Assembly: GCA_002269645.1 (NCBI GenBank) | Contig: NIVC01001187.1 | Location: 310,001 to 374,000 of the forward strand | Direction of reading: 5' to 3' | DNA: 64,000 nt | Source of the DNA: Macrostomum lignano | Lineage: Eukaryota | Part shown: piece by piece, positions 7,925 through 63,958 of the stretch | How the letters are laid out: each line of letters starts with the position of its first letter | Position numbering within the stretch: the first letter of the stretch is position 1 | Position numbers and translations under genes: made by a program | Notes under the pieces: generated by a model | Told to the model about the DNA's origin: nothing | Seen by the model: the letters and a program-made list of their open reading frames with translations, nothing else | Databases searched by the model: none

Positions 7925-8190
7925 CATACATGCGCAACTGCTGGCCGACCTGGCCGATCTGGCCACCGTAAATTGTGGTGGACCAGGGGTAAGTTGCAAA
8001 AATGCCCAACCTAAAGAATACAGATGGAGTACTAATTAGATGACGAGGCATTTAGCCCTAAAAAGACAGTCATAGTTACTCCTGCCGTTTACCCAAAATT
8101 GCGTTAAGGTTTCTTTTACAGGTAAGTCGCATTTTTGGTCGAAAAGTAAGTCGCATGGCCAGTGTAAATCAGGCGGGTTGCGCATGTATG
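7925..8190. mobile_element. 266-bp hAT-type MITE of the same family as the 51502-57851 element
   Basis: Perfect 14-bp TIRs CATACATGCGCAAC / GTTGCGCATGTATG; perfect 8-bp TSD ATATAATT (7917-7924, 8191-8198); internal TAAGTCGCA motifs. Confidence 0.95.
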
Positions 8191-13823: not shown

Positions 13824-14324
13824 CTTTCTGTCACTTAAAATGACTAGTAATGCTTTTATTCAAACTAGCAAAGTATTTTTCCATTGCTACAATAAGGAAC
13901 GAGATTCCTTATTAATAATATCTGTTAAGTCCGTAAGATTTTAGCTCTTCTTGGAAATAGGAATACTTGAATTTCTCGATTTGATAATAATTTTCTTGGG
14001 GAAAAGTGGGGAAAAGTGACTATGGTTTGCAATCGAAAATATCATGAAAAGAACAAAACAACACAATTTTTTGGAAGGTCGCATTCTGGTTTTGAAAATT
14101 GCATGCTGAAATTGGACCCAGGATGCTATTTTGCATCCTTTCCCCAGCGAAAAAAACGCCTGACTTGCAGCCTTAGGCGTGTGAGACTAATTTATGAACG
14201 TTATGATACGCTGCACGTATCCATCCATTTCTTCGCTCTCTTCTTAAATAGCGACGCTAAATTTTAAAACTATAAAAATATTTCAGGGAATTGACGGAGC
14301 AGTACAGCAGCCACAGCACTCAGC

Positions 14325-32300: not shown

Positions 32301-35239
32301 AACGCTCATTTTCCTAAAACTAGTTTTATAGCTATCAGAAGAATGTAAAATATTTAAACATTTGTTGTTGAATTTTAGAAACTGTACAACCAGTTGGCTT
32401 ACCTGACGCAATCGCCATTGCCGGACCACAATGCTGCTCTGCTGTGCATTCGCTTGGCCTATGTGTTACACGCCAATTCCGCAAATGAAAGCTCCGCCTT
32501 TCGAAAGTTTTTGAAGGACCTGAAGTCATTAGCCGACAACTCGTATCTTCCTGCGATGATGCACGATGAAATCTGGGAGCGGCTGTTAGAAATGATTAAC
32601 TGTCCAATTACAACGAAGGATAAAGAGGGTTTTCTTTGTGATGAAAACTTCAAGATGTACTGTGAGTAAACACCAAAGCTATAGTAGGTGATGTACGATA
32701 GGAACAAACTACCTTCGTTACCAAAAACAAATTGTCAAAGAGTATATTCTGCATCCTTCTCAGACCCAGATTATCTTGAGTGCCATCATTTTTAGTAAGT
32801 CGGATTCGTTTCTGTTGGCAAGCAGGTGAAGTGACGGTCCAAAAGCCCGCGTCTTGAAACTCACCCTAAAGCTTGGTGGGAATTATCATAATACCAGATG
32901 TAGCGAAATAGCTGCAACCCAAGTTTCTTACTTTCTTAATACCTGTTGTAGCTACATTTCATTCATTGTCACATCAGGTGCCAGAGTGGAAACGAATATC
33001 AAAAAGTTACTTAGGTTGCTTAGGTTAGGAGGAGGCAGTGGCGAAGATACGAGCTGGTCCTGGGCGCATGTTAGAGCCCTCTCAGGGCATGCAGGGTCGA
33101 GTAACTCAACTCCCCTCGTTTAACAACAGCAGCAACTAGCTGATGTGCTGACGAGCTACGAGATCACAAGTATTGCAAGAGCCATCCGTAATTTTCTTTC
33201 TAGGTTGCCCAAACGGCCATCCGTACGTCTTGGGAGAAGTAAGCAGCCAAAAAATATTTTAACGAACTAAGGCCGTTTATTTTATCCGTTTTTTTTATGC
33301 TAAAGTTGTCAAATTCAATCATTATTTTAATTTTCAGTGCACACAAGGATGGGTGAAGTACAAGTGTCACGAATGCGCTGCTGACATTGGGGGTCAGAAG
33401 CATAAAATAGCTGCAAACAACACCGAATACAAATGCAAGACAAAGATGGGCTTCTCCCCGCCATCTATGAAGGAAGGTCAGCAGCCTCTGCGCAAGCTCA
33501 CGCCAGCCAGTGCAGCTCTGATCCGGCTGCTGCAGCATCTGGCCATGTTGGTTTCTCCAGACTCCAGACGCAAACTCCAGACTCCAGACGCAAACTGCTA
33601 CTTGAGAGGGTTCGTCGACGACTTGAAATTGTTCAGCCAAGTAACCGGCAGAAGTGAGGAGGAGACATATCATATCCTCCACTTACTACTTAAGCAATTG
33701 GAGTCGGCCAAAAGCGAATCCGTTTCTTTTGATCTGAAAACTGACAAAAGCCGGAGAGAATTTGAGGACCAAATCGATAGGGAGTTGATACAGCCAATTA
33801 TGGGAAACCTCAGCGACCTTCTTCAGAAATCTAACAAAGAAATTGCGCAGCAAACATCGGAAATTTTGCAAATCATCCATGGTACTTCGAAAATGGAAGA
33901 AGAGGAGGAGGCTTCGCTCTGGAAATGTCACAGGCGGATAACCGTAAAGCACGCTGAGTATGCTTTCCAGGAACTAAGTACCGAACTCTCTGAACGATAC
34001 AGACTGACTGGAACGGTTATTAATTGGCTTCCTGTATTGCGTCACGTCGGATCCTTGCCTCGACTGATGAGACTGACAAAAGAATTGACGACATGTTACA
34101 ACTACAAAATTACCTCTAAAGACGCCAGCTCAAGGACTTTTCAAGAAGCCTGGCACGACCGTAGTGACGAGTGCAAGCTGCAGGATGTGTATGAATTTGG
34201 ACGAATTTGGGATGAACTCAAGCACCGACTGAAGCTGGCGCGGTTTGAAGACTTACCATATCCGGTTGTAAAGGGTGAAGTTTCCGCCTGTGACCTGCCA
34301 TTGGCAGCTCTGCTACCGCATTCGAGTGAATGGGGGCGTTGCATCGTGGCCCTAGTGCAGCTGCTTGTTGATGCTCAAAATGCGGTGATTGATGCCAGCG
34401 CTATCAAAACGGAGAAAATATCACTGGACGATATAGATCAGGCTGCTGTGATACCACGGGATCTAGAAGCGGGCCTCCTGCCGATACTACTGGCTAATAG
34501 TAGCTACTCGCTCAAAGATGCAGCCTGTGTTGAATATGATTTCAAGAGTCTCGAGTGCCAACTGGTGGACTTCTTGGCGCGCGGCCGTTGCCGAATAGCT
34601 CCTCTCTTATCACCAATCGTCTACAAGGATGAGGTACATCTGATGCAGCTCTTCAAGCGTCTGGAGCGAACTGTACCACAAAACTCAGCTCCGTCAAGCG
34701 TGCCACTGACTCAGGCGCTAAGCTCAAATCTGCCTCACGAGTTAAGAGACATCACTGAGCTCTTGGATGACTCGTTGCCTGCAGCCATGCGTTTCCTAAT
34801 CTCGCTGGCGCCGAAGGACACACAAGAGTTGCTGCATGCCTTCATGACTGAAAGGCTTGCAATGCCAGGTCTGCCCACACCACAGCTGCAGCGCAGCGTC
34901 ACATTAGCGGATACTAAGCTGCTCTGGATGTTCCTGGACCATCTGCGTTGCCGCTGTCTAATCCGAAGTGACTTGAACCCGTTTGAAGACTGTGGTGAAG
35001 TGATCGAGCTGCCAATGGAGTTGCCGAAAGAGCTGAAGAATCGGCGCTCAATTCTTATGGAGAAGCTGCATGCCTTCATCAGGCTGGAGCTGAGCAGTGG
35101 GCCAGCAATTTACGAGGGCATGGAGCTGCAGGAAGTGTGTGACATCTTTCCCGAGTACGATGAATTCAGCGCTTTCGACGGGAGCTTCTTGTGCGAGCAC
35201 GCGGTTGCTGTCTGGACCGCTCTCAATCGCATGGAGTGA
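14325..35239 (+). CDS. RNF213: RNF213 (mysterin)-like giant AAA+ ATPase / E3 ubiquitin ligase; multi-exon, with at least six apparent -1 frameshifts
   Basis: N-terminal Cys-rich ribbons and a possible CBM20-like segment (15910-16250). AAA core motifs: SGMGKS, YELTTDNAMKMLAI..PVVLMGETGCGKT, FFDEVNT, ACNPYR, LVYRVKPLP, FVSLRDV, IPLFIVGKPGSSKS, VVVLDEIGLAE, SNWALDPAKMNRG, FFGLRDY, SFPKDQEY, LYESLYDALNQYY, FPIPLINRLEKH. RING at 29985-30115; RZ finger CPNGHPYVLGE|CTQGWVKYKCHECAADIGGQKH (33204-33238 plus 33338 onward); stop at 35239. Not all internal exon boundaries were resolved. Confidence 0.93.
14693..15908 (+). repeat. Coding 45-bp tandem repeat, about 27 x 15 aa (VEETPNTGDRDQGRP), in exon 1 of the RNF213-like gene
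   Basis: No indels or stops across about 1.2 kb in the frame of ORF 14325-16724; flanked in frame by the Cys-rich N-terminus and the downstream globular domain. Confidence 0.9.
31850..32041. mobile_element. Degenerate hAT-like MITE in an RNF213-like intron
   Basis: Imperfect TIRs sharing GATCCAGG / CCTGGATC; near-TSD GCTGTATA / ACTGTATA (7 of 8 match). Confidence 0.5.
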
Positions 35240-38013: not shown

Positions 38014-39284
38014 CACTCAGCAACATTGAAAAGTTTCCACCCTCGCGCCAGCCATGTATATTTCGAGTTTCAAAACTGGTTTTTGTCGCCAGACTTGTGC
38101 CATAGACGATTGTTGATTTCGTCAACACGCACTTGGGCCATAGACAAAAACTTGGGTCATAGACGCCAGACAAGTCGAAGGAAACAGTCACATGAAGCAG
38201 ACAGCAGCAGCGTACAGGAGTCTAAAATCCACGTTCGCAATCAAACGCAAATGGCTCGCCAAACGACCGACCTGGAACGAGTGCGCGCCATTGGCATGCT
38301 GGACGCTGGATGTCCATCCGAGCTGTTGCTCGCCAAATTGGGCGGTCGCACACAGCAATCCGCAAACTGCAAATCATGTGCAGAGAAACGGGCAGCGTGG
38401 CGCACGCCACGCGCGGCCGGCGGCTCAATATGCGCAGTACAACTAGGAGGGCGGACCGGCGATTGCTGCGAATGGTGAAGGGAAGCCCCACATTGCCAGC
38501 CACCCTGCTACGGCTGATGTGGGCTGAAAGAAGCAGGCGAGGGAATATCCTGAGCGCCCAAACCATCCGACGACGATTGCGGGAGTCGGGGCTGCGATCC
38601 CGAAAGATGCACAAACGGCCACGCCTGACCCCAACCCATGTGGCCAGCCGGGAACAATGGGCAATGCAAAGGGTCCACTGGAGGCAGCAGCAGTGGCGGC
38701 GAGTGATTTTCACAGATAAGAGCCGCTTTCGATTGTTCCGTGCCGACGGCCGCATTCGCGTGTGGCGCCAGCCGCGCCAGGAGATGCTGCCGCAGCACGT
38801 GCAAAACTCTGAGAGCCAGTCAGCTTCTATTCACGTGTGGGCAGACATCACAATGCACGCGAAGACGGAGCTCGTGTTCCTGGATGCGACTGTGACTGCC
38901 GAGTCATACGCCAACCTTCTACAGACGCCCCTGCTGCCCTTCATTGATGCTTCATGTGGTGGCGTGGGGAACAGCGTCCTCCAAGACGACAACGCCCCAC
39001 CGCATCGCGCAGCCGCTGTGGCGCATCTGAAGGAGCTGCTGCACCTGCGAACCTTGCGCTGGCCGTCCCAATCACCGGACATGAATCCCATAGAGTACGT
39101 TTGGGATTACCTGAAGCGCTCGCTTCGGCGCGACAATCCGCCGCAAAACGTTGCCCAACTGCGCGAATCACTGTCTACTGCATGGCAACAACTACCGCAA
39201 GATTTTCTGCGACGCCTGGTTCTGGGAATGCCCCGAAGAGTGAGCGCTCTGCTGCACGCACGTGGCTGCTATACGCGTTACTGA
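38014..39284 (+). mobile_element. Tc1-like DD34E transposon; right TIR not found
   Basis: TA followed by a Tc1-style end CACTCAGCAACATTGAAAAGTTTCCACC at 38014, then the transposase ORF. Confidence 0.8.
38251..39284 (+). CDS. Tc1/mariner transposase (DD34E), one -1 frameshift near 38309
   Basis: MARQTTDLERVRAIGMLDAG|MSIRAVARQIGRS (HTH), SAQTIRRRL, WRRVIFTDKSRF, LQDDNAPPH and WPSQSPDMNPIE; 34 residues between the second D and E. Confidence 0.92.
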
Positions 39285-43633: not shown

Positions 43634-46178
43634 CTAAGCTTCAGTGAGTTTCCGCATTCCGTCAATGTGCAGCATGGCCTCGCTGTAGCTCCTGGGCACC
43701 ACCTGCGGCGCATCGGGCACGCAGTCCTCGCCAGCCTGCGCGGCGGCCTCTGGCGCGAACACGAAATAGAAATCATTGGTGGTGGTCCGCAGCCCGCTGT
43801 CCGGCTGCAGCACCTCAGCGTGCACGCGGACGACGCAACGACGGCCGTGCGAGCAGGTGACTTGAGAGGACAGGAACAGCAGCGAGCCGAGCTCGACTGG
43901 AGCACGGAAGGACACGTCCTTGACCTCGAGCAGCACCGGCTGCCGGCGGCAGTGGGCGAACGCGCAGATCCAAGCCGTCTCCAGGGCTTTGCGCATCAGG
44001 AAGCCGCCGAACACCTTGCAGTAGACGTTCATCTGCTCCGGGTGGCACAGATGAGCAGTCTTCAGCATTGTGTCGCGCAGCCAGACGCTGCCGACTGGGA
44101 GACGTCGACGGCTGAAGGTGAACGACCTGATAAAGGTGAAAAGGAGAAGCTGTATAAAAACAAGTTGGCCGCCTAGAATTGACTCAGACGCAGATGAGTT
44201 GGGGCAGAGCAGCTGCTCACTTGGGATCGATGGTGTCAAGAAACATTCGATGAATTTTGGCGATCTCTTCGTTGCGCGGCACAACGCTGAGCACAGACTG
44301 CGATGCCTGCTGCAGCCTGTAGGCCTTGGCCCGCTCGCCTCGCTGGAAAATCTCCCGGTCTGCGGCCGACTCCAGCAGCAGGGGGTTCAGCTTGGCGGCT
44401 CTGCGGGGTACCAGTCATTCACCCTTATTCATGCGGTTCCATAAGCTTGTAAATAAGTACTTATCACCTCACGGCCTGGTTTAATGCAAAACACTTGTTC
44501 TGGTAACTGATACGGGAAGGAGATACTGTAACCAAGATGTACAATCAGCGAGATACGACAGCCACTGCAACATCGGAGTTGCAGCTTTTACGCTGAGCTG
44601 GGCTGACCTACAAACCCTAAGCTGGCCTACTACCCTGAGCTGGCATACTACCCTGAGCTGGCATACTACCCTGAGCTGGCATACTACCTGAGCTGGCCTC
44701 CTACCTGAGCTGGCATACTACCTGAGCTGGCGTACTACACTGAGCTGGCATACTACCCTGAGCTGGCATACTACCCTGAGCTGGCATACTACCCTGAGCT
44801 GGCATACTACCTGAGCTGGCCTCCTACCTGAGCTGGCATACTACCTGAGCTGGCGTACTACACTGAGCTGGCATACTACCCTGGTTGCACCAAGGAGAAC
44901 AAAAGCCAACCTGTTCTACAACGGATGTCGAGCCGCGTTCACGAAGGTGGCGTCAAGCACGGGCGTCCAGGCGACGCCAGCAGCCCCGTCCTCGCCAGCC
45001 TGCTGTTCAATCTTCATGGTCACCTCGATGGAGCTGCTGCCAACCCAGGAGACGAAGCCGCTCAGCCGGAGGTCCCGATTAGCCGGGATGATGGGCGTGT
45101 GGACGCCTAGGGGCGAGAATTTATAGCTAATTTTCAGGTCTAAACTGGACCAACTAACTACTGGGAGTAGTCTATGTATTATCTAGACTGATGCCAACAC
45201 AAGTGTTCCGACTTAGTCACTCATTTCTATACTTACTTGAGTGGTACAGTAAAAAAGAGCCTTTTAAAGCCAAAATGCATTGATATATTCGGCGATAGGG
45301 CACTGCAGTGTGACTGTAACACAAACACTTACACATAGATAAAGTCTTGCCAAAGATCTGTACAAGAACTGATTAGCTCAACTCACAGACGCCATCAACA
45401 AAGGCGGTCACTATGGTAACGGGTGCGCGCTCAGCCCAGTGCGGCTGCCAGGCGTGCCGGTAGCTGATGAGGACGCCTAGGATGTCCAGATCCTCAAGCA
45501 GGCGACCAATCCGGATGCCGTTGTGCGTGTTGACGTATTTGACAGACAAGCCGGCCTGGGTGCGCAGGCTCAGCAGGGCCTCCTGGTAGCTGGCAGACAT
45601 TGGTTTAGCCAGCGACTGGGAGCCCAGCTGCTGCTCCCTGGCCAGGGCTTCCGTGAGGGCCGCGCAGTCGCGCCTGATGAGCCGCCAAAGTTTGCGTCAC
45701 TTTATATAATCACTCTCGATTGATGCATTTCTAGCAGTGGCTCTCAAACTCAAAAAACAGGCATTAACTCACACTTCAAATGGAGTGCCCGATGAGCCAG
45801 CAATTGTCATCAGCTGCTCTCGAACTAAAAAACGAACAAATTCCAATGCAGTTCAAGTGAGGGGGGGGGCGTAGCCTAGTGTTTCAGCGCGGCGCTCTCA
45901 TGTGCCAGCGGCCCAGGCTCGATTCTGCTCATGCAATTATCACCCTTGATGGCCAACCCCCCCGGGCACAGTGAAGTGTGCATGCCTAACAAATAAAGTG
46001 AGCCAGAGTGCACACAAGCCATGCCGCTAACTAGAATGCAAGCGCACGTGAGGCCCAGTAACTTAATACCTTTGTTCAATGGTATGCATCTTTCCAATGA
46101 GCTGATGCTTGACAGTTGCCTACTCGCAACAAAAATGCTGCTTTTGCAAAGCAGGGAGGCAAAGGCATTCAAAGCCAT
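43634..46178 (-). CDS. ACOT9: Mitochondrial acyl-CoA thioesterase 9-like (double hotdog); exons approximately 46178-46070, 45699-45387, 45106-44911, 44395-44221, 44126-43634
   Basis: Presequence MALNAFASLLCKSS; motifs GIRIGRLLEDLDILGVLISYRH, PVTIVTAFVD, LRLSGFVSWVGSSSIEV, PVLDATFV, KLNPLLLES, CHPEQMNVYCKVFGGFLMRKALE, FRAPVELGSLLFLSSQV and VPRSYSEAMLHIDG match ACOT9. Has apparent frameshifts near 45699 and 44243 and a possible in-frame TAG at 44916. Confidence 0.92.
44615..44883. repeat. 17-18-bp minisatellite (CTGAGCTGGCATACTACC), about 15 copies, in ACOT9 intron 3
   Basis: Tandem units visible directly. Confidence 0.92.
45864..45930 (+). mobile_element. Possible tRNA-derived SINE head in ACOT9 intron 1
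   Basis: G-run start, A-box-like TAGCCTAGTG (45872), anticodon-like CTCAT and B-box-like GGCTCGATTC (45916); it does not fold as a complete tRNA and no tail or TSD was identified. Confidence 0.4.
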
Positions 46179-50300: not shown

Positions 50301-51716
50301 ATAGTAATAATACCTTACTTAGTATTTTGTGCCCTATTCAAAATTTTCTAAATTTGCACCTACAATCAATTGTATAGTCATAGGCCCTAATGTTAAGCTA
50401 TGTGCATATTTAAAGAGATAACAATAATTGAGACAGAGTGTATATATCTATATCTATAAAAATGCAAATATAAAACTATATCAAAATGCAGCAGATTAGG
50501 CCTATTAAGTAAAAAAATAAAGGAGTACTGGATAAATAATGATTTTATTTACCTATTAGTATTAAAAAATATAAGCAACAAATTTATGTGTATAATATTG
50601 GATAAATATTTACTGCTATCTAATAAAGCCTTCAATCTTTTTAATTTTTGTTTCAATATATTTTTTAGTTGACTAACATTAAATATAACATATAATATTT
50701 ATAGTTTTATTGAAACTCATTAGGCTGCTAAATTATTTTTTTCAAAGCAACAGTTTTTTTGTTTTAAAAGATAGAAAATATACATATGTAACTATTATTT
50801 TTGCCTAGGCTTAGGGTGTTAGGTCCATTAAAACTCAATTGATATTTAGAAATTTAGGGCATAAGTTAGAAAGTACAAGCCTAGTCTAAAGGGTAGGATA
50901 TAATTGACTTTAGGTATAATAAATATTATTATATTAAGGATTTAATAAATAATTGTTCTAGTGATAATATGCATTGTATAATATCTGGTCTTATGTATTA
51001 AGCTAGTATTGTTAGATATGGTAAATATATTCCTATAACAATATCTATATGTTTTGCATAAAACCTCTAGATAAACCTTCCCATAGCTATATATATAGCT
51101 CTAATATATAATACCAATCAATCTGGTTAGGTATATTGTAGAACCAATCAACCAAGTACCAGCATTTTAAGGGGTAGAAAGAATAAAAAATATCAACAAA
51201 TGAATGAAACAGACAAGAGAAAACTAGAAAAAAAGAAGAGTGGCTTATACAAGTCATTAAAAACCAACAAATCAAAAGTGAAAAGAGCATTAAATACTTG
51301 TTGTTAAAGCCAAAGAAAAAGGATTTAAATTGCATAGTATGCCAATATATTTTTATTTTGAAAAATTATAAGAAAGTTTACCTGCTTTTTAAAAATTTAA
51401 TAATAAAGTAGATTGCTAAAATATATAAACTTAAAGTGACTAAAGTTCCATATTTTATATAATTCCTATTTCACTTAAAGTACAAATAATTGATTGAGAT
51501 TCATACATGCGCAACAGTCGGCCGAGTCGGCCGATCCGGCCGACCGATTTGGCGGCCAACCAAGTAAGTCGCAAAATTGATTAACCGCCAAAAAAAACGA
51601 AAAAACAAAAGACGAAAAAGGGGAAAGGAAAAGGAAAAAACGAAAAAAAGGGAGCAAAGAGAAAGAGAAAAACACAAAAAGAGTTGTAAGTGCTGTAAGT
51701 TGCAGCACTGAAGACA

Positions 51717-52618
51717 AGGTAAGTCGCACCGAGGGCGAGCTAAGTCGCACCGAGGGCAAGCTAAGTCGCAGCAGGACCGAGCTAAGTCGCATCGAGGGCG
51801 AGCTAAGTCGCACCGAGGGCAAAATAAGTCGCACCGAGCGAGAGCTAAGTCGCACTAAGTCGCAGCAGGACCGAGCTAAGTCGCACCGAGGGCAAGCTAA
51901 GTCGCAGCAGGACCGAGCTAAGTCGCACCGAGGGCGAACTAAGTCGCACCGAGCGAGAGCTAAGTCGCACTAAGTCGCAGCAGGACCAAGCTAAGTCGCA
52001 CCGAGGGCGAGCTAAGTTGCAGCAGGACCGAGCTAAGTCGCACCGAGGGCGAACTAAGTCGCACCGAGCGAGAGCTAAGTCGCACTGAGGGCGAGCTATG
52101 TCGCAGCAGGACCGAGCTAAGTCGCACTAAGGGCGAGCTAAGTCGCACCGAGGGCAAAATAAGTCGCACCGAGCGAGAGCTAAGTCGCAGTAAGTCGCAG
52201 CAGGACCGAGCTAAGTCGCACCGAGGGCGAGCTAAGTCGCAGCAGGACCGAGCTAAGTCGCACCGAGGGCGAACTAAGTCGCACCGAGCGAGAGCTAAGT
52301 CGCACTAAGTCGCAGCAGGACCGAGCTAAGTCGCACCGAGGGCGAGCTAAGTCGCACCGAGCGAGAGCTAAGTCGCACCGAGGGCGAGCTAAGTCGCAGC
52401 AGGACCGAGCTAAGTCGCATCGAGGGCGAACTAAGTCGCACCGAGCGAGAGCTAAGTCGCACTAAGTTGCAGCAGGACCGAGCTAAGTCGCACCGAGGGC
52501 GAGCTAAGTCGCACCGAGCGAGAGCTAAGTCGCACTGAGGGCGAGCTAAGTCGCAGCAGGACCGAGTAAGTCGCAGCAGGGCCGAGGTAAGTCGCAGCAG
52601 GACTGAGTTAAGTCGCAG
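51717..52618. repeat. Subterminal array of about 45 TAAGTCGCA-cored units (mostly 21 bp) inside the hAT end
   Basis: Units GCTAAGTCGCACCGAGGGCGA / GCTAAGTCGCAGCAGGACCGA; the same core occurs singly near the other end and in the 7925 MITE. Confidence 0.95.
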
Positions 52619-52967
52619 AGCATCTTTAGGATTATTAGGATAGGATTAGTTTAGGATGAATTTAATGTATCACTTACTAGGGTGTAGGCTACGTGTGCAT
52701 TAACGCATCAATTTGAAAAATTAAGAATTACGAAGCCAGAAATGGCTAAGGAATAGAAATAGGGATAGAATAACTTATAAGCAGTAATTTTTCAGCCCTA
52801 TTACAATTGCAAATCATACTTTTAATAATATTTAATTAGCAAATTAAAACTGCAAGATTCTAACGGTCTTATATATGAACTTAGAAGAACTGTAGTCTTA
52901 ATGATTATGCATGTACCATTGTAATAATTGATTAAAATTGTAGCAGATTAAAACTGATAAAAAACTT

Positions 52968-55361
52968 TCAAAATAGTCCACTTAGCAAATCAGAATCAGA
53001 ATCTTTAATTTCCTCGTCTACGTTGGATTCTTTTTGCCGTTGACCTCCAGGAGCATCAGAACGCCAGTGTTTTTTCAGCCAATCATTGACATAAATATCC
53101 GGCTTAAATTTCATCAGCGGAGGCCCATTTATTCGAATCCGTAGTAGATGCTCCAATGTTTTTGGTGCCAAGCGTGTTCTCCTGTCATAGGCAATGTGCT
53201 TATAGATAGAAAACCCTCTTTCAGCCTCAGCTGATGATATTGGCAAAGTTAACACAACCATAATTAGATTCTTTATTCTGGGCAGCCATTCAACAGTTCT
53301 TGTCTCTAGAAAGTGATAGAAAGTGACTCCAAAATTTCACCGGACCTTTGCCTTTGTAGGCACAGAAGTCAACACTATGCGAAGTGATCAAACTTTTTAG
53401 GAGTAGACCGAACTGACCAGAGATTGTCCTTTCTGTAGCGCGTTCTGAAGCATCTGCATCTCTAGAGTCTGAATCAGAAAGATGGTCCTCTGTTTCAGAT
53501 TCAGAGCTGTCATCTTCCATTCCAAACCGTCTAGCAAGAGGTATGATTCTCGAACTGTATGTAAAGACAGTATGTAATGTTTCAGCATTAGGCAATAACA
53601 CTGGGTTGAGCACATTAAATATTGAGTAGTCATCCTCAGGAAAATAATTACGCAGCTGATCAATTATGCTATCAATGATTCGACTGCGAATCTCATCCAG
53701 TGCTGGATAAGCTCCCATGTCAACAACACTGCCACGTCCACTAGCATCAAATAATCTATTTCTTAGAGATCTGTCTGCAGCAGAACCTGGTTGCTTCAAC
53801 TCAAACCTCTCTGTTGGATCGCTGCTTCCAGGGCCGGAAGGACAAGCAAAGTTAGAATAAGATAGGTCTCTTGTGTGACATCCTGAATGGTATTCCAGCT
53901 GCGGATATCCATCTGCAGTTCCCAAAACTCGACGACACTTGCAGGAAGCCAAAAAGTCCACAATGCGAGGACCATTGTTCGTTTTTAAGGTTTCTAGTGA
54001 ATGGATAAGGTTAGTGTGGCGTTCTTGCAAGCCAATAAATGTACCCTTGGCTCTTTGAAACTGCAAGGACTCAAATTCCAGTAATTTTAGAATGTCCATG
54101 AGAAATAGATGTAATGAATAATACCGGACATTTTGCAATGTTTTCAATAATCCAGAGGCAGTTGCTTTACTTTCGTCATCAAAGCCTGAGGAAGGTGATT
54201 TGATATTTTCTAAATTTGTCAGAAGCAAGTAGTACGACTTTCGAATCACATCAAGAGCAGACACTTCCGATGCAACCCACCTGATGCGATATATTCTTTT
54301 TAATTCATAGAAAACCAAGTTGAGTGCTTCCGAAGTTTGTGCCAAAGATGCCTTACGTTTAACAGTGTGGCTCATATAAAATTTGTGTAGAGAATTTATA
54401 TTCTTATCGAGATGTTGCATAAATGGGAAGATTTCAAAGGCATGATAGATTGAAAGTTCTAACTTATGCGCTGCACAATGGTGCTGAAAAAATTGTTTGC
54501 TAGCCCAAGGCCTCAGTTGACTTATTAATCCCACTCGACTTCCTGTCATTACGGATGCACCATCAGTTGTCACCCCCATAGCCTTCGTTTGATTTCATCT
54601 TCTAGCTTGTCATCCGAAAATAAACGGATGAGAAGTTCATAAATGCTTCGTCCAGTCTCTACTTCAGTCAGACGTTTAAACCGATAAAAAACATCAAAGG
54701 TTGGCTGTTTTCAAGAACTCTGAAGTATATCATGACGTAGCTGTTTGAATGAATATCAGACGTTGTATCTAGTACAATAGAAATCGGAAGATTGTCAGCA
54801 CTTTTAATGTAATTCACAAATGTCCGATGCATTGTATTACTGATTGATTCCACCATTGCTGCGGCACTTTTGCGATGCTTATGATGGCTCCCCATATCCA
54901 ACCCATTTTTTACTTGTAAATCAATCATATTTGGATGAGCACTGAATGGAATATTAGATTTGACTTCGGCATAAACTGTTGTCAAAACTCGGGCTGTTAT
55001 TTCATCTCGTTTAGTTTTAGCTAGTCTAGCGGCCTCATTCATCTGTTTGAGTTGCTTTGCAAGAACTGAAGTATGTTTTTCCTTCATCCACTTTATGGCG
55101 TCACTGTAAAGTGTATTTGATGAATGTTCCTGTAGTTTTCTTCGTACGCTATCTTTTGCATGACCTTTGGGAATGTAGCCTTGTTCTGTTGCAAAAGTTA
55201 ACTTACGTTGGCTCTCTAGATTTGTCTCCTTTTTCTTATGTGCATTCAAAAATTTTCTGCAGATCCGACATTGTATTCCAGATCTTGATAGATCTTCGGT
55301 GTTTTGAACATATTGAAACCATGTCTTCATTTCTTGTGACACAAATTTTCTTGAAAATGAT
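52968..55361 (-). pseudogene. hAT transposase exon (ZNF862/C17orf113-like), three frameshifts (~54688, ~54580, ~53292)
   Basis: Zn-finger-like CRIC; first acidic motif SIVLDTTSD; TTDGASVMTG; CxxH motif HCAAHKLEL; IRWVAS; C-terminal dimerisation region LPISSAEAERGFS and RTRLAPKTLEHLLRIRINGP. Confidence 0.92.
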
Positions 55362-55492
55362 CTGCAATGGTCAAATTAGAGAATATTTTGGGATTTGGAC
55401 TATTTGTGAGTATCTAAAAGCAATATGCTAATAAGTGCAATACACAGTACACTATACATTAATTTACAGTTCGTCAGTTTCCATTTACTTAC

Positions 55493-57120
55493 TGTGACTG
55501 GTGCATCTCCAAAGAATGTAACCACTCCTCTCAAAAACCAGATGTATCCTCCCAGTCCTTTTTAGGGAAAACTTCAATATTTTCGCCCATCATAGAGGAA
55601 GACGAGGGCTTTGATGCTGAAGTGGCTAGACATGCGTCTGCAGATGTGCTTATGCATGGTATTTTTCTTTGCGATGGCCCTGCTTCTGCAGTATTTACTT
55701 GTACTATTTCAACATCACCTGAACCCCTTGAGTCGCTCGAATCTAAATCAACAATAGGACTTTGGCAAAGTGATCGTTTCGTTGATTGTCTTTGAATATT
55801 TACTTGCCTAATAATTTCCACTTGTAGTTTGCTTGTTTGCTGGTCATTCTCCAACAACTCTCTTCTTTCCTGTACATTTGCAGCAGAGCAAAAATTAGAA
55901 GTTTCTGCAGCAGCAGTTTGAACAGCATGATCTCGATTAGCTGCTATTTGCTCTGAAAATTCATAGGACCTGGCCAATTCACTACGGTGTGAGCTTTCAG
56001 AACATGGAGCTGGAGCAGGAGCTAGTCGCATTTCGATTCTTTCTGTTGCTGATGAAGCAGATGCTAATGCTGAGTCTGCCAATGTACCTGCTTCTCTTGA
56101 AGGTGTATTTATGATGGCTTCAATATTGTCCTCTAAAATCCAATGAGCACCTGAGCAGTCATTTTCTCTACCTGGAGTCAACTGTCCAAGTTTCCACCTT
56201 GTAAAAAGCAAAGGCTTTCGTAACTCACTGCCGGATTCAGGGCACCGGTTTATTGAATAGTCCTCATGACCAAGTTCATCCCATTCTCTTGCTGGCTTTA
56301 AGATGTAGTTGGGCTTGTCTCTTAGCCTACGATAAATGGACTCAAAAAATGTGCACCTGTTATTTTGCGTACTTCGTGCATAGATGATCATGTAATGCAC
56401 ATTGTTCCTAATAATTTCAGCTAATGAGTTATCAATGATAATTTTATCTTCATAAACAGGTCTTCTTTGTGTTGCATGCATTTTAGCTAGTCGCAGTTTT
56501 CCAATGCTACTGGCAGTTGTGGAACTTGAACTGTCCGTTTCTGATCTAGAAAAGTCTCGTTGATACAAGAGAATAATGGCCATAGCACTTTTACCATTCC
56601 CATTCTTTAATGCATTTGGTTCTGTTGGAATTGTCTTACTAGCAGACTTGAAAAAATCAATGATGGATGACTGCGATGATCCACTAGGAGCGGAACTTGG
56701 CAGCCCATGTCTAGTTTTTCCCTGATACCCAATAGATGTATCGGTAAAAAACATATCTGCTGCTTCCTGCTTCTCTTTTGATGCAATAACAAAGAAACTG
56801 CTGTCCGTTTTGAAGCCCGAGGACCGATAGAAGTCAGCAGAAAATGAAACCACAGGTCGTCTAAAATCGCCGCTATATTCTTGAACTCCAATCAGAAGAA
56901 AATCACGGAGTCTCACTGGCACTGATCCTAATAGCATTGCAGTTGTGGAACAAACTTTCTTCAGCTCAATGAACTCTGAAAATTCTTGAGATCCAATATT
57001 AGGCTCATCAGTATTTAACTCATTTATAACAATTGAGCACTCACTCTCAGCTAGAATACCATTGATAGCTAGGATGCCACTTAGAATCAGTAGGCAAAGA
57101 CAACTAAGGCTGTACATCAT
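55493..57120 (-). CDS. Signal peptide + lamin-tail-domain-like module + low-complexity linker; upstream exon of the transposon gene (TGA at 55531-55533)
   Basis: ATG at 57120 directly after acceptor TTTCACAG. Signal peptide MMYSLSCLCLLILSGILAINGILA. LTD-like motifs SIVINELNTD..EFIELK, NALKNG..AIILLY, DYSINRCP, TPGRENDC. A phase-2 GTAAGT donor at 55492 and TTGCAG acceptor at 55362 join it in frame to the transposase exon. Confidence 0.75.
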
Positions 57121-57564
57121 TCTGTGAAAGATTAAGTCGAGTATATGATTTTGGTGATAAAATAAAATTGATTTATGAGTATTACTATATAAATAAAACA
57201 TTTAAAAGCCCTTACCTTTACCAATTCATGTACAGAAAGTAAGTGTAAATACAACCAATTGCCTTGGTAGTTTAGTTATATGCTCGTATCAGATGCAGGC
57301 AGACAGCATAGGCTGCCAAGGTGCTATAAGTTAAGGTTAACTTTCACTATTTGGCTTTACAGACTGCTTTTATCGCTGCATGCATTGACTTAGCCTTAGC
57401 TTGTGCCATCATACTCATACAGCTATATATACATATGTATCTCTGCCACTCCCCACTTTTGCAACCTTACACTGTACAATCATGCCTAAAACACTCCGTG
57501 TCAAGTGTACTGTTCTAGTGCCACATGGGGTACAAATACGATTAGGAATGACAAGAGTCAAAAC

Positions 57565-57851
57565 CATACATGCACAATAGTTGGCCGATATGGACGACTG
57601 ATTTGGCGGCCAACCAAGGTAAGTTGCAAAAATGCCCACCCAAATAAATACCAAAGTAGTATTAAGTAGCTGACGAAGCATTTTGCCTTAATAAAGACAG
57701 TCATAGTTACTCCTGCCGTTTACCCAAAGTTGCGTTAATTTTGCTTTCAGGTTTTTTTCATGTAAGTCGCATTTTTGGCCGAAAACTACGTCGCATTTTT
57801 GTTAAAACTAAGTCGCACGGCCGACCAAATTTTGGAGGTTGCGCATGTATG
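57565..57851. mobile_element. Complete MITE-like module forming one end of the large hAT element
   Basis: Begins with a TIR copy CATACATGCACAA. Shares GGTAAGTTGCAAAAATGCCCA and AAAGACAGTCATAGTTACTCCTGCCGTTTACCCAAA with the 7925-8190 MITE. It has no TSD of its own. Confidence 0.85.
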
Positions 57852-58322
57852 TTGAGATTCTTGACATTTGAAGACTTCTGCAACTCATATGGGTCAGATA
57901 AGCTCAGCAATATTGTGGATAGAGTAGAGATGCTAATATATGATTTTGTAATTTTAACTGATCCCAGATGGCATCCTGACTTTAAACCCCATGAAAACCC
58001 AGTTTTAATAATTTTTGTTCAAAAATGAATTATGATTATTGACTAATACAAATCATACTTCAAAGCATTCCTTTTGCTAATTTAAAGAAAATTTGTACAT
58101 GCTGTTAATTTTATAGGCATATTTAGTGACCCATTTTAATGATTTTTTTTTAAGATTATTCACTGTCATTAAACTATTCTCACTAAATTCATGAGCTCTA
58201 ACTATAACTTAAATTTGAGTTTTTTGCTTAACTTTAAAAAATCAGAAGCACACAGATCCTGCGCAGGAATCCAGTGTGCACTTGTCTGCTAGCTTAATAA
58301 AGCAGTCAGACAGGCAAGACCA

Positions 58323-61300
58323 ATGAAGATAGATCGGAGCCGCCTTCCCGGACACTGCGGCTGCGAGGAGGCCGACTGCAAGGCCCTAGTGGACTGGCTT
58401 CGGACAGCGCCAGACGCCGACTTCCTGGCCCGCATCAAAGGCATCACGCACTGGGTCTGGGGCAAGTGCGAGCTGGGCCTGTGGGCCGACGTGCTGGACA
58501 GGTTCGATGCTTTCTTAGAAACCGCCTGCGAGCCGGCCTACAAGGACACCGGCGCCGCTGCGGCCACCGCGGCAGCAGCTTCACAGGCGGCCGCCTCGTC
58601 TGGTGCCAACGAGGCAGAAGGCGCCACCGCTGCTACAGCCAGCATGACCTGGACTCTGGCTGTTGATCTGCCCGAGAATGGGAAGCTGGCTTCCGCCGTG
58701 TGCTCCATCATGGATTTCACATCGCTGCTGGTTGAGCACGCTGTTTATCGATCGCTATATGGGTCTTTTGATCGGCTGCTCACTCTGTTCCAGGTGAGGT
58801 TGTGTGTTTGTATTCTGGCACTTTGTGGCGCCAACTGCTGATGGTCAGGCTGTTTGTGGCGCCAAGTGCTGATGGTCAGGCTGTTTGTGGCGCCAAGTGC
58901 TGATGGTCAGGCTGTTTGTGGCGCCAAGTGTTGATAGTTAGGTTGTTTGTGGCGCCAACTGCTGATGGTCAGGGGTGTTTGTGGCGCCAACTGCTGATGG
59001 TTAGGTTGTTTGTGGCGCCAACTGCTGATGGTCAGGCTGTTTGTGGCGCCAACTGCTGATGGTCAGGGGTGTTTGTGGCGCCAACTGCTGATGGTCAGGG
59101 GTGTTTGTGGCGCCAACTGCTGATGGTTAGGTTGTTTGTGGCGCCAACTGCTGATGGTCAGGCTGTTTGTGGCGCCAACTGCTGATGGTCAGGGGTGTTT
59201 GTGGCGCCAACTGCTGATGGTCAGGGGGTTTGTGGCGCCAACTGCTGATGGTCAGGCTGTTTGTGGCGCCAACTGCTGATGGTCAGGCTGTTTGTGGCGC
59301 CAACTGCTGATGGTCATTCTGTTTGTGGCGCCAACTGCTGATGGTTAGGTGTGTTTGTGGCGCCAACTGCTAATGGTCAGGGGGTTTGTGGCGCCAACTG
59401 CTGATGGTCAGGGGTGTTTGTGGCGCCAACTGCTGATGGTCAGGGGTGTTTGTGGCGCCAACTGATGATGGCCAGAGTGTTTGTGGCGCCAACTAAGAAT
59501 CGTCGAGATGTTTGAAACTGGAAATCCAATTGTGAGATCTGTGTATACAAAAGTTTTTTTGTAAATAAAATCTTATAAATCTCGATAACGATCCCCCTTT
59601 ATCGCGCAGTCCCGCCGGTACGACGTGACTCTCTCCGTTCTGGGCCTTCTGTTGTCATTCGCGAAGTCCTCCACCCAGCTGGAGCAGCTGGACCCAACGG
59701 TGCGCACCCAGCTCTACACCGTGCTGTACTCGCTGTCCCGCTCCTGGTGCGGCCCGGCCAGCCCCTGGCGCCTGGCCGACTGGGCCCAGGACGGCTTCTC
59801 GCATGCGCCGCCGCGCAGCCTGCTGGTGCCCTGCCGGACAGGCTCGGCCAGGGACGCCTTCGTCTGCGAGCTGCGCATGGAGCCTGGCGGGGCCACGCCT
59901 GGCGATCCGTGCGCTCACATGGAGCTGCTGCTGCGCAACGAGCCACGGCTTGCTGCCCCCGACCTCATGCAGGTGAGCAGTGGCTGTAAATTTCTGGTTT
60001 AAATTGTGGAAATTGCACAAATCTCTGTGTTCAAATGGTGGAAATTGCTCAAATCTCTGTGTTCAAATGGTGGAAATTGCTCAAATCTCTGTGTTCAAAT
60101 GGTGGAAATTGCTCAAATCTCTGTGTTCAAATGGTGGAAATTGCTCAAATCTCTGTGTTCAAATGGTGGAAATTGCTCAAATCTCTGTGTTCAAATGGTG
60201 GAAATTGCTCAAATCTCTGTGTTCAAATGGTGGAAATTGCTCAAATCTCTGTGTTCAAATGGGGGAACTGCTCAAATCTCTGTGTTCAAATGGGGGAACT
60301 GCTCAAATCTCTGTGTTCAAATGGTGGAAATTGCTCAAATCTCTGTGTTCAAATGGTGGAAATTGCTCAAATCTCTGTGTTCAAATGGGGGAACTGCTCA
60401 AATCTCTGTGTTCAAATGGGGGAACTGCTCAAATCTCTGTGTTCAAATGGTGGAAATTGCTCAAATCTCTGTGTTCAAATGGTGGAAATTGCTCAAATCT
60501 CTGTGTTCAAATGGTGGAAATTGCTCAAATCTCTGTGTTCAAATGGGGGAACTGCTCAAATCTCTGTGTTCAAATGGGGGAACTGCTCAAATCTCTGTGT
60601 TCAAATGGTGGAAATTGCTCAAATCTCTGTTTAAATGGGGGAATTGCTCAAATCTCTGTTTAAATGGGGGAATTGCTCAAATCTCTGTGTTCAAATGGGG
60701 GAATTGCTCAAATCTCTGTGTTCAAATGGGGGAATTGCTCAAATCTCTGTGTTCAAATGGGGGAACTGCTCAAATCTCTGTGTTCAAATGGGGGAATTGC
60801 TCAAATCTCTGTGTTCAAATGGGTGAATTGCTCAAATCTCTGTGTTCAAATGGGGGAATTGCTCAAATCTCTGTTCAAATGGAAGAATTGCTCAAATCTC
60901 TGTTTAAATGGGGGAATTGCTCAAATCTCTGTGTTCAAACGAGGGGAATTGCTCAAATCTCCCGTGTTCAAACGAGGGGAATTGCTCAAATCTCCCGTGT
61001 TCAAACGAGGGGAATTGCTCAAATCTCCGTGTTCAAACGAGGGGAATTGCTCAAATCTCCCGTGTTCAAACGAGGGGAATTGCTCAAATCTCCCGTGTTC
61101 AAACGAGGGGAATCGCTCAAATCTCCGTGTTCAAACGAGGGGAATTGCTCAAATCTCCGTGTTCAAACGAGGGGAATTGCTCAAATCTCCCGTGTTCAAA
61201 CGAGGGGAATTGCTCAAATCTCCCGTGTTCAAACGAGGGGAATTGCTCAAATCTCTGTGTTCAAATGGGGGAACTGCTCAAATCTCTGTGTTCAAATGGG

Positions 61301-63958
61301 GGAATTGCTCAAATCTCTGTGTTCAAATGGGGGAATTGCTCAAATCTCTGTTTAAATGGGGGAATTGCTCAAATCTCTGTTTAAATGGGGGAATTGCTCA
61401 AATCTCTGTTCAAATGGAAGAATTGCTCAAATCTCTGTTTAAATGGGGGAATTGCTCAAATCTCTGTGTTCAAACGAGGGGAATTGCTCAAATCTCCCGT
61501 GTTCAAACGAGGGGAATTGCTCAAATCTCCCGTGTTCAAACGAGGGGAATTGCTCAAATCTCCGTGTTCAAACGAGGGGAATTGCTCAAATCTCCCGTGT
61601 TCAAACGAGGGGAATTGCTCAAATCTCCCGTGTTCAAACGAGGGGAATTGCTCAAATCTCCCGTGTTCAAACGAGGGGAATTGCTCAAATCTCCGTGTTC
61701 AAACGAGGGGAATTGCTCAAATCTCCCGTGTTCAAACGAGGGGAATTGCTCAAATCTCCCGTGTTCAAACGAGGGGAATTGCTCAAATCTCCGTGTTCAA
61801 ACGAGGGGAATTGCTCAAATCTCCCGTGTTCAAACGAGGGGAATTGCTCAAATCTCCCGTGTTCAAACGAGGGGAATTGCTTAAATCTCCGTGTTCAAAC
61901 GAGGGGAATTGCTCAAATCTCCGTGTTCAAACGAGGGGAATTGCTCAAATCTCCCGTGTTCAAACGAGGGGAATTGCTCAAATCTCCCGTGTTCAAACGA
62001 GGGGAATTGCTCAAATCTCTGTGTTCAAATGGGGGAACTGCTCAAATCTCTGTGTTCAAATGGGGGAATTGCTCAAATCTCTGTGTTCAAATGGGGGAAT
62101 TGCTCAAATCTCTGTTTAAATGGGGGAATTGCTCAAATCTCTGTTTAAATGGGGGAATTGCTCAAATCTCTGTGTTCAAATGGGGGAATTGCTCAAATCT
62201 CTGTGTTCAAATGGGGGAATTGCTCAAATCTCTGTGTTCAAATGGGGGAACTGCTCAAATCTCTGTGTTCAAATGGGGGAATTGCTCAAATCTCTGTGTT
62301 CAAATGGGTGAATTGCTCAAATCTCTGTGTTCAAATGGGGGAATTGCTCAAATCTCTGTTCAAATGGAAGAATTGCTCAAATCTCTGTTTAAATGGGGGA
62401 ATTGCTCAAATCTCTGTGTTCAAACGAGGGGAATTGCTCAAATCTCCCGTGTTCAAACGAGGGGAATTGCTCAAATCTCCCGTGTTCAAACGAGGGGAAT
62501 TGCTCAAATCTCCGTGTTCAAACGAGGGGAATTGCTCAAATCTCCCGTGTTCAAACGAGGGGAATTGCTCAAATCTCCCGTGTTCAAACGAGGGGAATTG
62601 CTCAAATCTCCCGTGTTCAAACGAGGGGAATTGCTCAAATCTCCGTGTTCAAACGAGGGGAATTGCTCAAATCTCCCGTGTTCAAACGAGGGGAATTGCT
62701 CAAATCTCCCGTGTTCAAACGAGGGGAATTGCTCAAATCTCCGTGTTCAAACGAGGGGAATTGCTCAAATCTCCCGTGTTCAAACGAGGGGAATTGCTCA
62801 AATCTCCCGTGTTCAAACGAGGGGAATCGCTCATATCTCCGTGTTCAAACGAGGGGAATTGCTCAAATCTCCGTGTTCAAACGAGGGGAATTGCTCAAAT
62901 CTCCCGTGTTCAAACGAGGGGAATCGCTCAAATCTCCCGTGTTCAAACGAGGGGAATTGCTCAGATAGTCAAGTGAAGAACAGGTGAGAGAATCGCTGAG
63001 CTAACGAGCCGCTAACACATCCAACTTGCGCAAAGCAATCGTCGTCCCCCCCATCTCCCAGGACCGCTTCAACGTGTTCGCCCGGCTCCGCCTCGTCCAC
63101 GCCTACTCCAGCGGCCATTCGCGCCGTCAGCTGCTCCGCGTCCACCTGCTGGCCATTGCCGCCTTCGCCTACCTCAGCCTGGTGAAAACTCTGCCAGCCT
63201 GCGATGTGGAAGGCCTTCTAAGCCTGCCGGACACCTCGGACGATTACATGAACCTGCACGCGGCCGTGCTGAAGACCGTGACCTCGCTCATTCAGATTGG
63301 CCAGACTCAGCTGGTTGAGACCCTCGGCCTGCGCTACCATCACGGCCTGCTGCCCAGCCTGCTTCGCCGTGCCGTCAGCAGCATCGTTAGCAGCGGCGGC
63401 GCCGCCTCAGGCGAGTCACCGCTCACCCCGGCCAGGCTCAAGCAGGCCACCGCTATACTCAGCACGCTGTACCACATCACATCGTCTCATGATAGAATGT
63501 CGCCTTCGCCCAGCCTGCTGGATCCGCTACTGCAGCTGGTGCAGTGGCAGGCCGCTCCGGACAACTGGCTGGGCCTGTGCATCCGGTCTGTCCGGGTGCT
63601 GGACTGCCTGTGCAACTTGGCGGCCAGCCAGGCCCGCCTGCCCGGAGTCCTGTTCTCCGCCCTGCTCGGCCGGCTGCAGGCCGAACTGCAGCTGCAGCAG
63701 CAACAGCCGGCCAACTGCCTGCAGAAGCTGGGCCTATTGAAACGCCTGCTTCATCTGCTCAAACGGCTGGTTACTGAGCCGGACTTTGCCGATTCTGTTC
63801 GACGCACCGTGGACTCCGGACAGCTGCTCCGGCTGGTCCGCTGCCTGCTGGACTGCGCGCCAGCCCTGCGCTTTGCCGGCGCCGACCTGCTCGCCGCCTA
63901 CATTCAGCACGAGCCTTCGTCACTGTCCGCCATGCAGGAGAGCGGCATCACTGATCAG
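58323..63958 (+). CDS. HUWE1: HECT E3 ligase HUWE1, 5' part: exons 58323-58793, 59610-59972, 63062-63958; continues past the window
   Basis: MKIDRSRL..ADCKALVD..WVWGKCELGLWADVLDRFD matches human MKVDRTKL..ADCRALID..WNIGKCELYHWVDLLDRFD. Later exons have YHHGLLPSLLR and HEPSSLSAMQESGITD, matching the N-terminal armadillo-like region. All junctions are GT-AG, phase 0, with no frameshifts. Confidence 0.96.
58820..59493. repeat. 31-33-bp minisatellite (TGTTTGTGGCGCCAACTGCTGATGGTCAGGC), about 21 copies, in HUWE1 intron 1
   Basis: Tandem units visible directly. Confidence 0.95.
60003..62964. repeat. 29-32-bp minisatellite (GGAAATTGCTCAAATCTCTGTGTTCAAATGGT and variants), about 95 copies, in HUWE1 intron 2
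   Basis: Tandem units visible directly; the overlapping ORFs at 59980-62987 are repeat translations. Confidence 0.97.

Follow-up and report, generated by a model that had tools for sequence, protein, structure and literature searches.

The locus examined here raises a question of protein trafficking: how does a transposase that begins like a secreted protein come to act on chromatin? The element lies in a 64,000-nucleotide stretch of the Macrostomum lignano genome (GenBank assembly GCA_002269645.1, contig NIVC01001187.1, positions 310,001 to 374,000), which we call the window and whose coordinates are used below unless another sequence is named. It is a 6350-bp hAT DNA transposon that spans positions 51502-57851 on the minus strand. 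As far as we know, hAT transposases all act in the nucleus, and the general view is that DNA transposases are synthesised in the cytosol before nuclear import. An earlier, sequence-only reading of the window had noticed that the transposase gene of the element starts with a hydrophobic leader and a secreted-type lamin tail domain (LTD), and had left the choice between a captured secreted cargo and a chimeric transposase with unusual trafficking. The second option is supported by the conservation of the leader and by the loss of N-glycosylation sequons along the whole protein. The window copy is a defective member of a hAT family whose transposase, of ~1300-1340 amino acids (aa), carries a predicted signal peptide and an LTD-type module. 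We consider it rather probable, though far from certain, that this protein enters the endoplasmic reticulum (ER), stays unglycosylated there, and then reaches a nucleus.

The ends of the element are well defined. The terminal inverted repeats (TIRs), with the sequence CATACATGCGCAAC, match each other at 14 of 14 bp, and the window copy is flanked by the 8-bp target-site duplication (TSD) AATCTCAA (TTGAGATT on the plus strand). In ~17 other genomic copies (99.1-99.8% identical), the homology stops exactly at 57851, the outer edge of the 5' TIR, and the flanks are all different. Therefore, these ends are the ends of a real mobile element, which bears out the hAT assignment that the sequence-only reading had made from the perfect TIRs and the TSD. 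Perfect 8-bp TSDs are also found at three further elements checked at both ends (GCAACTAG, TTTCTGGA, and TAACATCC). If two mismatches are allowed, the window contains the TIR word five times, compared with 0.52 expected, and all five sites fall in the hAT element or in a 266-bp miniature inverted-repeat transposable element (MITE) at 7925-8190. Two other candidates for a 5' end are ruled out. The internal TIR-like site at 57565-57578 is not the true end because the ~17 copies end at 57851, and CATACATGTGCAGC at positions 6984-6997 of the locus L042 is not the 5' TIR of the copy C3487 because its flanks mismatch; the true end of that copy is at 7999, with the TSD TAACATCC.

There are 48 occurrences of the motif TGCGACTTA in the window, compared with 0.47 expected, always within elements of the hAT family and in a single orientation. 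Most of these motifs form the 3' subterminal array listed in Table 1, and two are located in the 5' subterminal region. Subterminal binding repeats of hAT elements usually show this arrangement, so the TGCGACTTA repeats are probably bound by the transposase. At least 40 genomic copies have the N-terminal exon and the transposase exon on one contig in a constant arrangement, and the subfamilies in the genome show ~99%, 90%, 68%, 53%, and 45% protein identity to exon 1 of the window copy. The family is young, multi-copy, and recently active.

The gene is read on the minus strand. The ORF that starts with the ATG at 57120 has the hydrophobic leader and the motifs quoted by the sequence-only reading, and the phase-2 GT..AG intron that it had placed at 55492-55362 is likewise seen. 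The portion of the LTD module that aligns with LTD repeats is 56554-57042, and the C-terminal part of the module holds the motifs YARS..NNRC, SINRC, and TPGRENDC. A GT..AG pair resembling the putative intron of the 5' untranslated region (5'-UTR) is present in the sister subfamily. The intron between the coding exons has an identical phase and position in the 68%-identical subfamily, and the ORFs (open reading frames) of the entries P0001 and P0002 stop just past that point. In the linker, a basic cluster (QRKI in the window copy, ~55660-55671; RKR or KKK in relatives) is conserved and looks like a nuclear localisation signal (NLS).

Exon 2, which ends with a stop codon at 52968-52970, was aligned to the open 799-codon copy C4213. 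Its C-terminal region matches Dimer_Tnp_hAT (PF05699) with an E-value of 4.8e-8 and 33.1 bits, compared with a cut-off of 21.4 bits; the open sister copy matches this family too, and weakly matches Hermes by phmmer. The D, D, C..H, and RW columns are invariant across 12 full-length relatives, and the same motifs are readable in the ORFs of the window copy. The Glu of AERGFS is in the consensus of the full-length relatives, in a column that is not invariant. These residues mark a predicted DDE catalytic core with CxxH and RW motifs.

The window copy is a dead pseudogene with no intact transposase gene, a state that the sequence-only reading overlooked. It carries a premature TGA, two 1-nt deletions, and a 10-nt insertion (Table 1), and the last zinc-ligand His is replaced by Tyr (codon 55108-55106; among the locus entries, 19 have His and 12 have Tyr). 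At the TGA position, most other copies have Arg (27 locus entries, against 14 with the stop). The TGA is common to a sub-lineage of copies at different loci, indicating that those copies were probably mobilised in trans. The in-frame fusion of about 1340 aa proposed earlier thus describes what the family encodes and not what the window copy encodes: the TGA and the frameshifts interrupt the latter, whereas the open sister copy encodes 1306 aa, and an unbroken copy of the window subfamily would encode ~1337 aa by codon count.

Is the N-terminal module a fixed part of the transposase or a passenger? The sister copy C3487 (positions 1636-7999 of L042) has the same TIRs and both exons open. Its identity to the window copy is 68% in exon 1 and 75% in exon 2, and its phase-2 GT..AG intron interrupts the same codon. 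GenBank entries of Macrostomum lignano include proteins that match the transposase part of C3487 at 99% and 73% identity. Outside the Macrostomum lignano genome, an exhaustive HMMER search with the domain profile finds 559 cluster representatives at E <= 0.001, 95 of them at E <= 1e-30; the sequences derive from SRA, ENA, or JGI assemblies. Word-index searches had recovered few of these (four matches for exon 1 and two for the full-length profile). The long matches, of 1000-1250 aa, are single uninterrupted ORFs in which the leader, the domain, the linker, a W..F...W motif, a CxxC..H..H finger, and the hAT core follow one another. These distant relatives are 22-31% identical, and Dimer_Tnp_hAT is found in four of the six that were scanned. 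Among single-domain matches, the zinc-finger region of the family is present in 45 of the 47 that extend at least 170 aa further, and the transposase core in 19 of the 20 that extend at least 400 aa further. Around one distant intronless relative, on a 74-kb ENA contig, no convincing pair of TIRs was found.

In comparisons between subfamilies, the ratio of nonsynonymous to synonymous substitution (dN/dS) is about as low in the LTD module (0.16-0.18) as in the transposase exon (0.15) and is higher in the linker (0.34-0.53), indicating that the N-terminal domain is constrained as strongly as the enzyme. The continuous ORFs and the co-occurrence counts in distant relatives refute the cargo option of the sequence-only reading, as do the in-frame fusion in every subfamily and the equal purifying selection. 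Its proviso that the exon might be a one-off, lacking from other copies of the family, fails for the same copies that confirm its expectation of finding the exon consistently beside this transposase: the at least 40 same-contig copies, joined by many distant relatives. The N-terminal module has long belonged to the transposase of a whole hAT clade and is maintained there by selection; it is not cargo.

The relationship of the N-terminal domain emerges from profile comparison. An hhalign alignment of 48 family members with 24 LTD repeats gives a probability of 98.4% (E 4.5e-15, 101 columns). The hidden Markov model profile of the family also matches seven proteins in 8 to 16 separate stretches each. 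One such protein, P0042, matches Pfam LTD (PF00932) with an E-value of 7.5e-95, and a named example is Hypp2610 of Branchiostoma lanceolatum (P0166). Like the hAT protein, these LTD-repeat proteins begin with a signal peptide directly before an LTD unit; in P0042, a ~200-aa unit occurs ~8 times and is followed by a C-terminal transmembrane helix. The motifs INE.N.D.P...EFIEL, FxxIG, NG..A.AL.Y, vD.vvY, S.xRC, and TPG.xNxC are shared and colinear over the ~200-aa unit, the last three accounting for the remainder of the hAT domain. This colinearity over the full unit indicates that the module corresponds to one extracellular LTD-repeat unit with its own signal peptide in front. These profiles support homology between the N-terminal domain and the ~200-aa LTD unit that is repeated in animal cell-surface proteins. 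The clade probably gained the module in a single event, from the 5' end of an LTD-repeat gene. The LTD-repeat proteins differ from the hAT protein in having at least eight tandem units, a C-terminal transmembrane helix (seen in P0042), no transposase, and an unreduced number of sequons (below). The hAT module differs from their units in having longer loops and extra conserved Cys residues; four Cys residues (C28, C57, C293, and C322) are invariant in it. An AlphaFold2 model built from 48 sequences has a pLDDT of 84.3 and a pTM of 0.86, with beta strands and several helices; it replaces a model from four sequences that was unusable (pLDDT 35). The LTD may serve in ligand or DNA binding. A likeness to R.HinP1I, obtained with a four-sequence profile against PDB sequences (E 0.51), is a chance match.

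The leader in front of this domain is conserved in most of the clade. A hydrophobic core is present in the leader of 53 of the 59 complete representatives, directly before the motif C-x-[VIL][VIL]INE[IL]N, and the median leader length is 28 aa. The test is heuristic: it takes Met-started representatives with a leader of 15-60 aa and demands a Kyte-Doolittle mean of at least 1.8 over 11 aa, a threshold that is reached by 3.9% of control 30-aa segments of the same proteins. In the window copy, the leader MMYSLSCLCLLILSGILAINGILA, which ends before ESEC, has an h-region of signal-peptide length and then a polar region with small residues. Among relatives, the sequence of the leader varies freely while its hydrophobic character is kept, which is how signal peptides behave. 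A signal peptide of cleavable type is the prediction supported by this heuristic. In 13 full-length members, no hydrophobic segment is found between the LTD module and the transposase, so the protein is predicted to be soluble in the secretory pathway. No KDEL-type retention signal is present at the C-terminus of the members shown. Several full-length members (P0028, P0059, P0067, P0089, P0100, L042, and the window copy at 52971-52990) end with S-x-(L/I)-F, as in SGLF, STIF, SELF, and SRLF.

A protein that passes through the ER is exposed to the N-glycosylation machinery, and the family carries a mark that points to such exposure. We counted N-x-S/T sequons (x not P) against composition-preserving shuffles. 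In 145 representatives of the family (58,186 residues), 110 sequons are found and 485 +/- 19 are expected (ratio 0.23, z -19.8). The depletion is directional, as the reverse motif S/T-x-N in the same sequences is found 511 times and expected 485 times (ratio 1.05), and Q-x-S/T is found 276 times and expected 268 times (ratio 1.03). D-x-S/T is enriched (657 against 469, ratio 1.40, z +10) where N-x-S/T is depleted, which fits replacement of Asn by Asp at former sequons. All parts of the protein are affected: the LTD module (44 against 255 expected, ratio 0.17), the linker with the zinc finger (36 against 113, ratio 0.32), and the transposase core (17 against 77, ratio 0.22). The open Macrostomum lignano copy has no sequon where 9.7 are expected (ratio 0.00), the window copy has one where 9.9 are expected (ratio 0.10), and forward motifs are fewer than reverse motifs in 12 of 12 full-length members. 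Sequon numbers are close to expectation in extracellular LTD-repeat proteins (142 against 147, ratio 0.97), in host ORFs of the window (13 against 14, ratio 0.92), and in four outgroup hAT proteins that have no module (17 against about 20, ratio 0.83-0.86).

Because the purge covers the whole length, including the core, we read it as the trace of a full-length protein that meets the glycosylation machinery and in which glycans are harmful to function; from this we infer that the transposase enters the ER. BiP, which is retained in the ER through HDEL, carries a similar signature. BiP/Kar2, an ER protein of cytosolic ancestry, shows a near-total loss of sequons, which are kept in non-ER relatives such as cytosolic Hsp70, and sequon loss in a cytosolic protein recruited to the ER is described as being among the sharpest signatures of secretory-pathway proteins (PMC5562741). 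The hAT clade contrasts with the outgroup hAT proteins in the same way. The likeness is an analogy at the level of this signature only; the hAT members shown end in the S-x-(L/I)-F-like motif and not in a retention signal. The sequon-purge test might also be applied more widely, to screen nuclear or cytosolic enzymes for recruitment to the secretory pathway.

We propose that the signal peptide translocates the transposase into the ER, where the protein would stay unglycosylated because the clade has purged N-x-S/T sequons along its whole length. The transposase would afterwards reach a nucleus, with the basic cluster helping, and its route to chromatin could be either re-entry in the same cell or uptake by another cell. 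In the nucleus, the zinc finger would bind the TGCGACTTA subterminal repeats, and the DDE core would cut and paste elements and MITEs at the 14-bp TIRs, with 8-bp TSDs as the result. A further-reaching version, which we regard as possible but rather doubtful, is that the soluble unglycosylated transposase is exported via the ER and acts in the nucleus of another cell, for example after uptake by a germ cell; the LTD would then be a surface-binding or uptake part and the basic cluster an NLS.

Several points weigh against the proposal. We know of no route that takes a transposase from the ER lumen to chromatin, and the zinc finger and the CxxH motif require reduced cysteines. The splice and the fused protein in Macrostomum lignano are deduced from DNA. 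The control set of module-less hAT proteins is small (four proteins, 2709 residues), and the family members are related, so their sequon counts are not independent. As to the LTD, Pfam LTD has no match at E <= 1 on the window protein or the open sister copy, nor does any other Pfam family match exon 1 of the window copy at E <= 1, and LTD matches in just 6 of 48 relatives, weakly (best E 0.008). A Foldseek search of the domain model against the PDB and BFVD libraries has no match at E <= 0.001; the best PDB matches are Ig V domains (E 0.04 or worse) with no LTD entry among them, and the best BFVD match has an E-value of 0.009. The LTD fold put forward by the sequence-only reading therefore stands on profile evidence, namely the profile-profile alignment and the matches to LTD-repeat proteins, and is not confirmed by Pfam on the window protein or by structure search.

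Of the other explanations, the one that deserves most attention, although we find it rather unlikely, is synthesis of the protein in the cytosol followed by direct nuclear import, the leader being an inefficient or unused relic of capture and the LTD an accessory that binds DNA, chromatin, or a protein. The nuclear action of known hAT transposases and the conserved NLS-like basic cluster agree with it, lamin tail domains do bind DNA and chromatin, and the four invariant Cys residues could form a metal site instead of disulfides. An unused leader should, however, decay, and 53 of the 59 complete representatives, at 22-31% identity, retain its character while its sequence is free to vary. In addition, such an explanation does not account for the 4-5 fold loss of N-x-S/T along the whole protein, which is directional in that the reverse motif is not reduced. 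The purge is a difficulty also for a two-product model, in which intron retention or an internal start would give a secreted regulator or helper (leader, LTD, and linker) next to a nuclear transposase that starts at the exon 2 Met (MKTWFQY): depletion in the core as strong as in the LTD module is unexpected if the core is never in the ER. This model draws on the read-through of the GTAAG donor into an immediate in-frame TAA in both subfamilies, on the Met 10 codons into exon 2 in both subfamilies, on GenBank models of Macrostomum lignano copies that begin at or past this Met, and on the precedent of the P-element repressor, which arises by intron retention. Distant relatives, however, have neither an intron nor a conserved Met there and their ORF is continuous, and the GenBank models derive from copies with exon 1 deleted or broken. 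We consider two products improbable.

If the transposase were anchored in the membrane, its LTD facing the perinuclear lumen and its catalytic part the nucleoplasm, a signal peptide on a nuclear enzyme would make sense. The lack of a hydrophobic segment between module and transposase in the 13 full-length members and the extension of the purge to the core make such anchoring very improbable. Hardly credible at all is a one-off capture of a host exon by transduplication, carried as a passenger with no role in the element. The module does resemble host-type extracellular LTD-repeat proteins, and the 5' end of the window subfamily is a composite with a MITE, so the ends of the family are replaceable; yet the module is present in all genome subfamilies, down to 44-54% identity, and in hundreds of distant relatives, and it is fused in frame with a dN/dS of 0.16. 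A genome search with one LTD-repeat query found no LTD-repeat gene, and Pfam LTD across the genome gave only three sub-threshold matches; both results are weak evidence. Transduplication and Pack-MULE-type capture likewise place host-like coding sequence within TIRs, but the hAT module differs from them in being fused in frame to the transposase, ancient, and under purifying selection.

The family shares with other members of the hAT superfamily (Hermes, Ac, TcBuster, and Tip100) the short TIRs, the 8-bp TSD, the short subterminal repeats, the BED-type zinc finger, the DDE core with CxxH and RW motifs, and the C-terminal hAT dimerisation domain. It differs from them in having ~540 extra N-terminal residues (leader, LTD module, and linker), a protein of about twice the usual size, an element of 6.35 kb, and purged sequons. 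The TSDs of ~20 copies, inspected by eye, show no obvious nnnTAnnn (Buster) or nTnnnnAn (Ac) pattern. PF27073 and PF14291 give no match by hmmscan at E <= 1, and weak precomputed matches exist for relatives. At E <= 1e-5, DUF4371 (PF14291) has 81 matches in the genome, many of them within open frames that are 500-1100 aa long. The LTD-hAT copies counted above are not among these matches, indicating that Macrostomum lignano has several other hAT-like families. FGF3, PTHrP, and nucleus-targeted parasite effectors combine an N-terminal secretion signal with a basic nuclear-targeting cluster. None of them is a transposase, and in FGF3 and PTHrP the two fates are alternatives. Full-text literature searches turned up no paper in which a lamin tail domain or a signal peptide is linked in this sense to a hAT element or a transposase; the sequence-only reading likewise knew of no described hAT with such an architecture.

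A large hAT clade thus appears to break the rule that transposases go from cytosol to nucleus, which suggests that a step in the life cycle of a cut-and-paste transposon has gone unrecognised. If the ER routing is true, it raises the questions of how a lumenal or secreted enzyme gets to chromatin, of what the LTD binds, and of whether a transposase moves between cells, from soma to germline, and evades germline silencing. Action between cells, if true, would give DNA transposons an equivalent of the soma-to-germline routes that some retroelements take. Experiments on the case are feasible, as transgenesis is available in Macrostomum lignano (PMC5730564) together with a naturally open copy and probably thousands of MITE substrates.

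Table 1 Features of the hAT element and lesions of the window copy, listed from the 5' end of the element to its 3' end (window coordinates)
Feature	Position	Strand	Remark
TSD, 5' side	57852..57859		8-bp direct repeat
5' TIR, 14 bp	57838..57851	-	homology break point in ~17 other copies
5' end of element, complete MITE-like unit (287 bp)	57565..57851	-	5' TIR and degenerate inner 3' TIR
Putative 5'-UTR intron (GTAAGG...CACAG)	57122..57215	-	ends 1 nt before the ATG; predicted from the sequence
Start codon and signal-peptide-like leader MMYSLSCLCLLILSGILAINGILA	57049..57120	-	ATG at 57120; leader kept in relatives
LTD-type module, residues 28-336	56113..57039	-	profile comparison
Ser/Ala/Glu-rich linker	55493..56112	-	basic NLS-like cluster, DWEDTS.F..W motif
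Lesion: premature TGA	55531..55533	-	in-frame, 39 nt upstream of the splice donor
Phase-2 GT..AG intron between coding exons	55362..55492	-	predicted
Coding exon 2 (broken): zinc finger, hAT DDE core, dimerisation domain	52968..55361	-	ORFs in three frames
BED-type CxxC...HxxxxxH zinc finger	55106..55270	-	C, C, H, H columns invariant in full-length relatives
Lesion: 1-nt deletion in T run, frameshift	54686..54691	-	compared with open copy C4213
Lesion: 1-nt deletion in G run, frameshift	54573..54577	-	compared with open copy C4213
Lesion: 10-nt insertion, frameshift	53317..53326	-	compared with open copy C4213
hAT C-terminal dimerisation region	53133..53282	-	Pfam PF05699
3' subterminal array, 21-bp period, ~43 copies of TGCGACTTA	51720..52618	-	motif count
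3' TIR, 14 bp	51502..51515	-	100% complementary to its 5' partner
TSD, 3' side	51494..51501		TTGAGATT on the plus strand; identical to 57852-57859

The 5' end of the window subfamily is itself a MITE-like unit, whose degenerate inner 3' TIR, CATACATGCACAAT on the plus strand, lies at 57565-57578. The sister subfamily at L042 does not have this unit at its 5' end and has only about the first 100 bp in common with it. The presence of the unit in the young subfamily and its absence from the older sister suggest that the element ends have been replaced via neighbouring MITEs. Such MITE-mediated end replacement could once have carried an upstream host exon into the element. The 266-bp MITE of the family in the window contains TGCGACTTA twice, and its 14-bp TIRs are perfect. 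Searching the genome with the 287-bp 5' unit gives 3163 first-look MITE candidates, only 40 of which were scored, and MITE derivatives of the family in the genome probably number in the thousands.

Other parts of the window hold genes and repeats. A GC-rich open frame at 58293-58841 on the plus strand adjoins the hAT element and contains WVWGKCELGLWADVLDRFDAFLE, which recalls the N-terminus of HUWE1-type E3 ligases. It is possible that the element sits in an intron of a host gene or a short way upstream of one. A run of very long open exons at 21148-35239 on the plus strand encodes a giant protein with a Pfam AAA match (E 5e-6) and a C3HC4 RING match that is weak and falls below threshold (E 7.5e-5; 22.9 bits, compared with a cut-off of 27 bits), which we take to be RNF213/mysterin-like. 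Long tandem arrays that look coding are located at 232-1550, 2282-3125, 14440-15600, and 59977-62987; they include PVEETPNTGD repeats inside an 809-aa ORF (14295-16724) and a 3-kb minisatellite at 60-63 kb, and agree with the reported richness of the Macrostomum lignano genome in simple and tandem repeats. At 38226-39284 on the plus strand, an open 352-aa ORF encodes a Tc1/mariner-type transposase (DDE_3, E 5.7e-14; HTH_Tnp_Tc3_2, E 2.2e-12), and an ORF at 43634-44386 on the minus strand matches the thioesterase superfamily (4HBT, E 8e-5).

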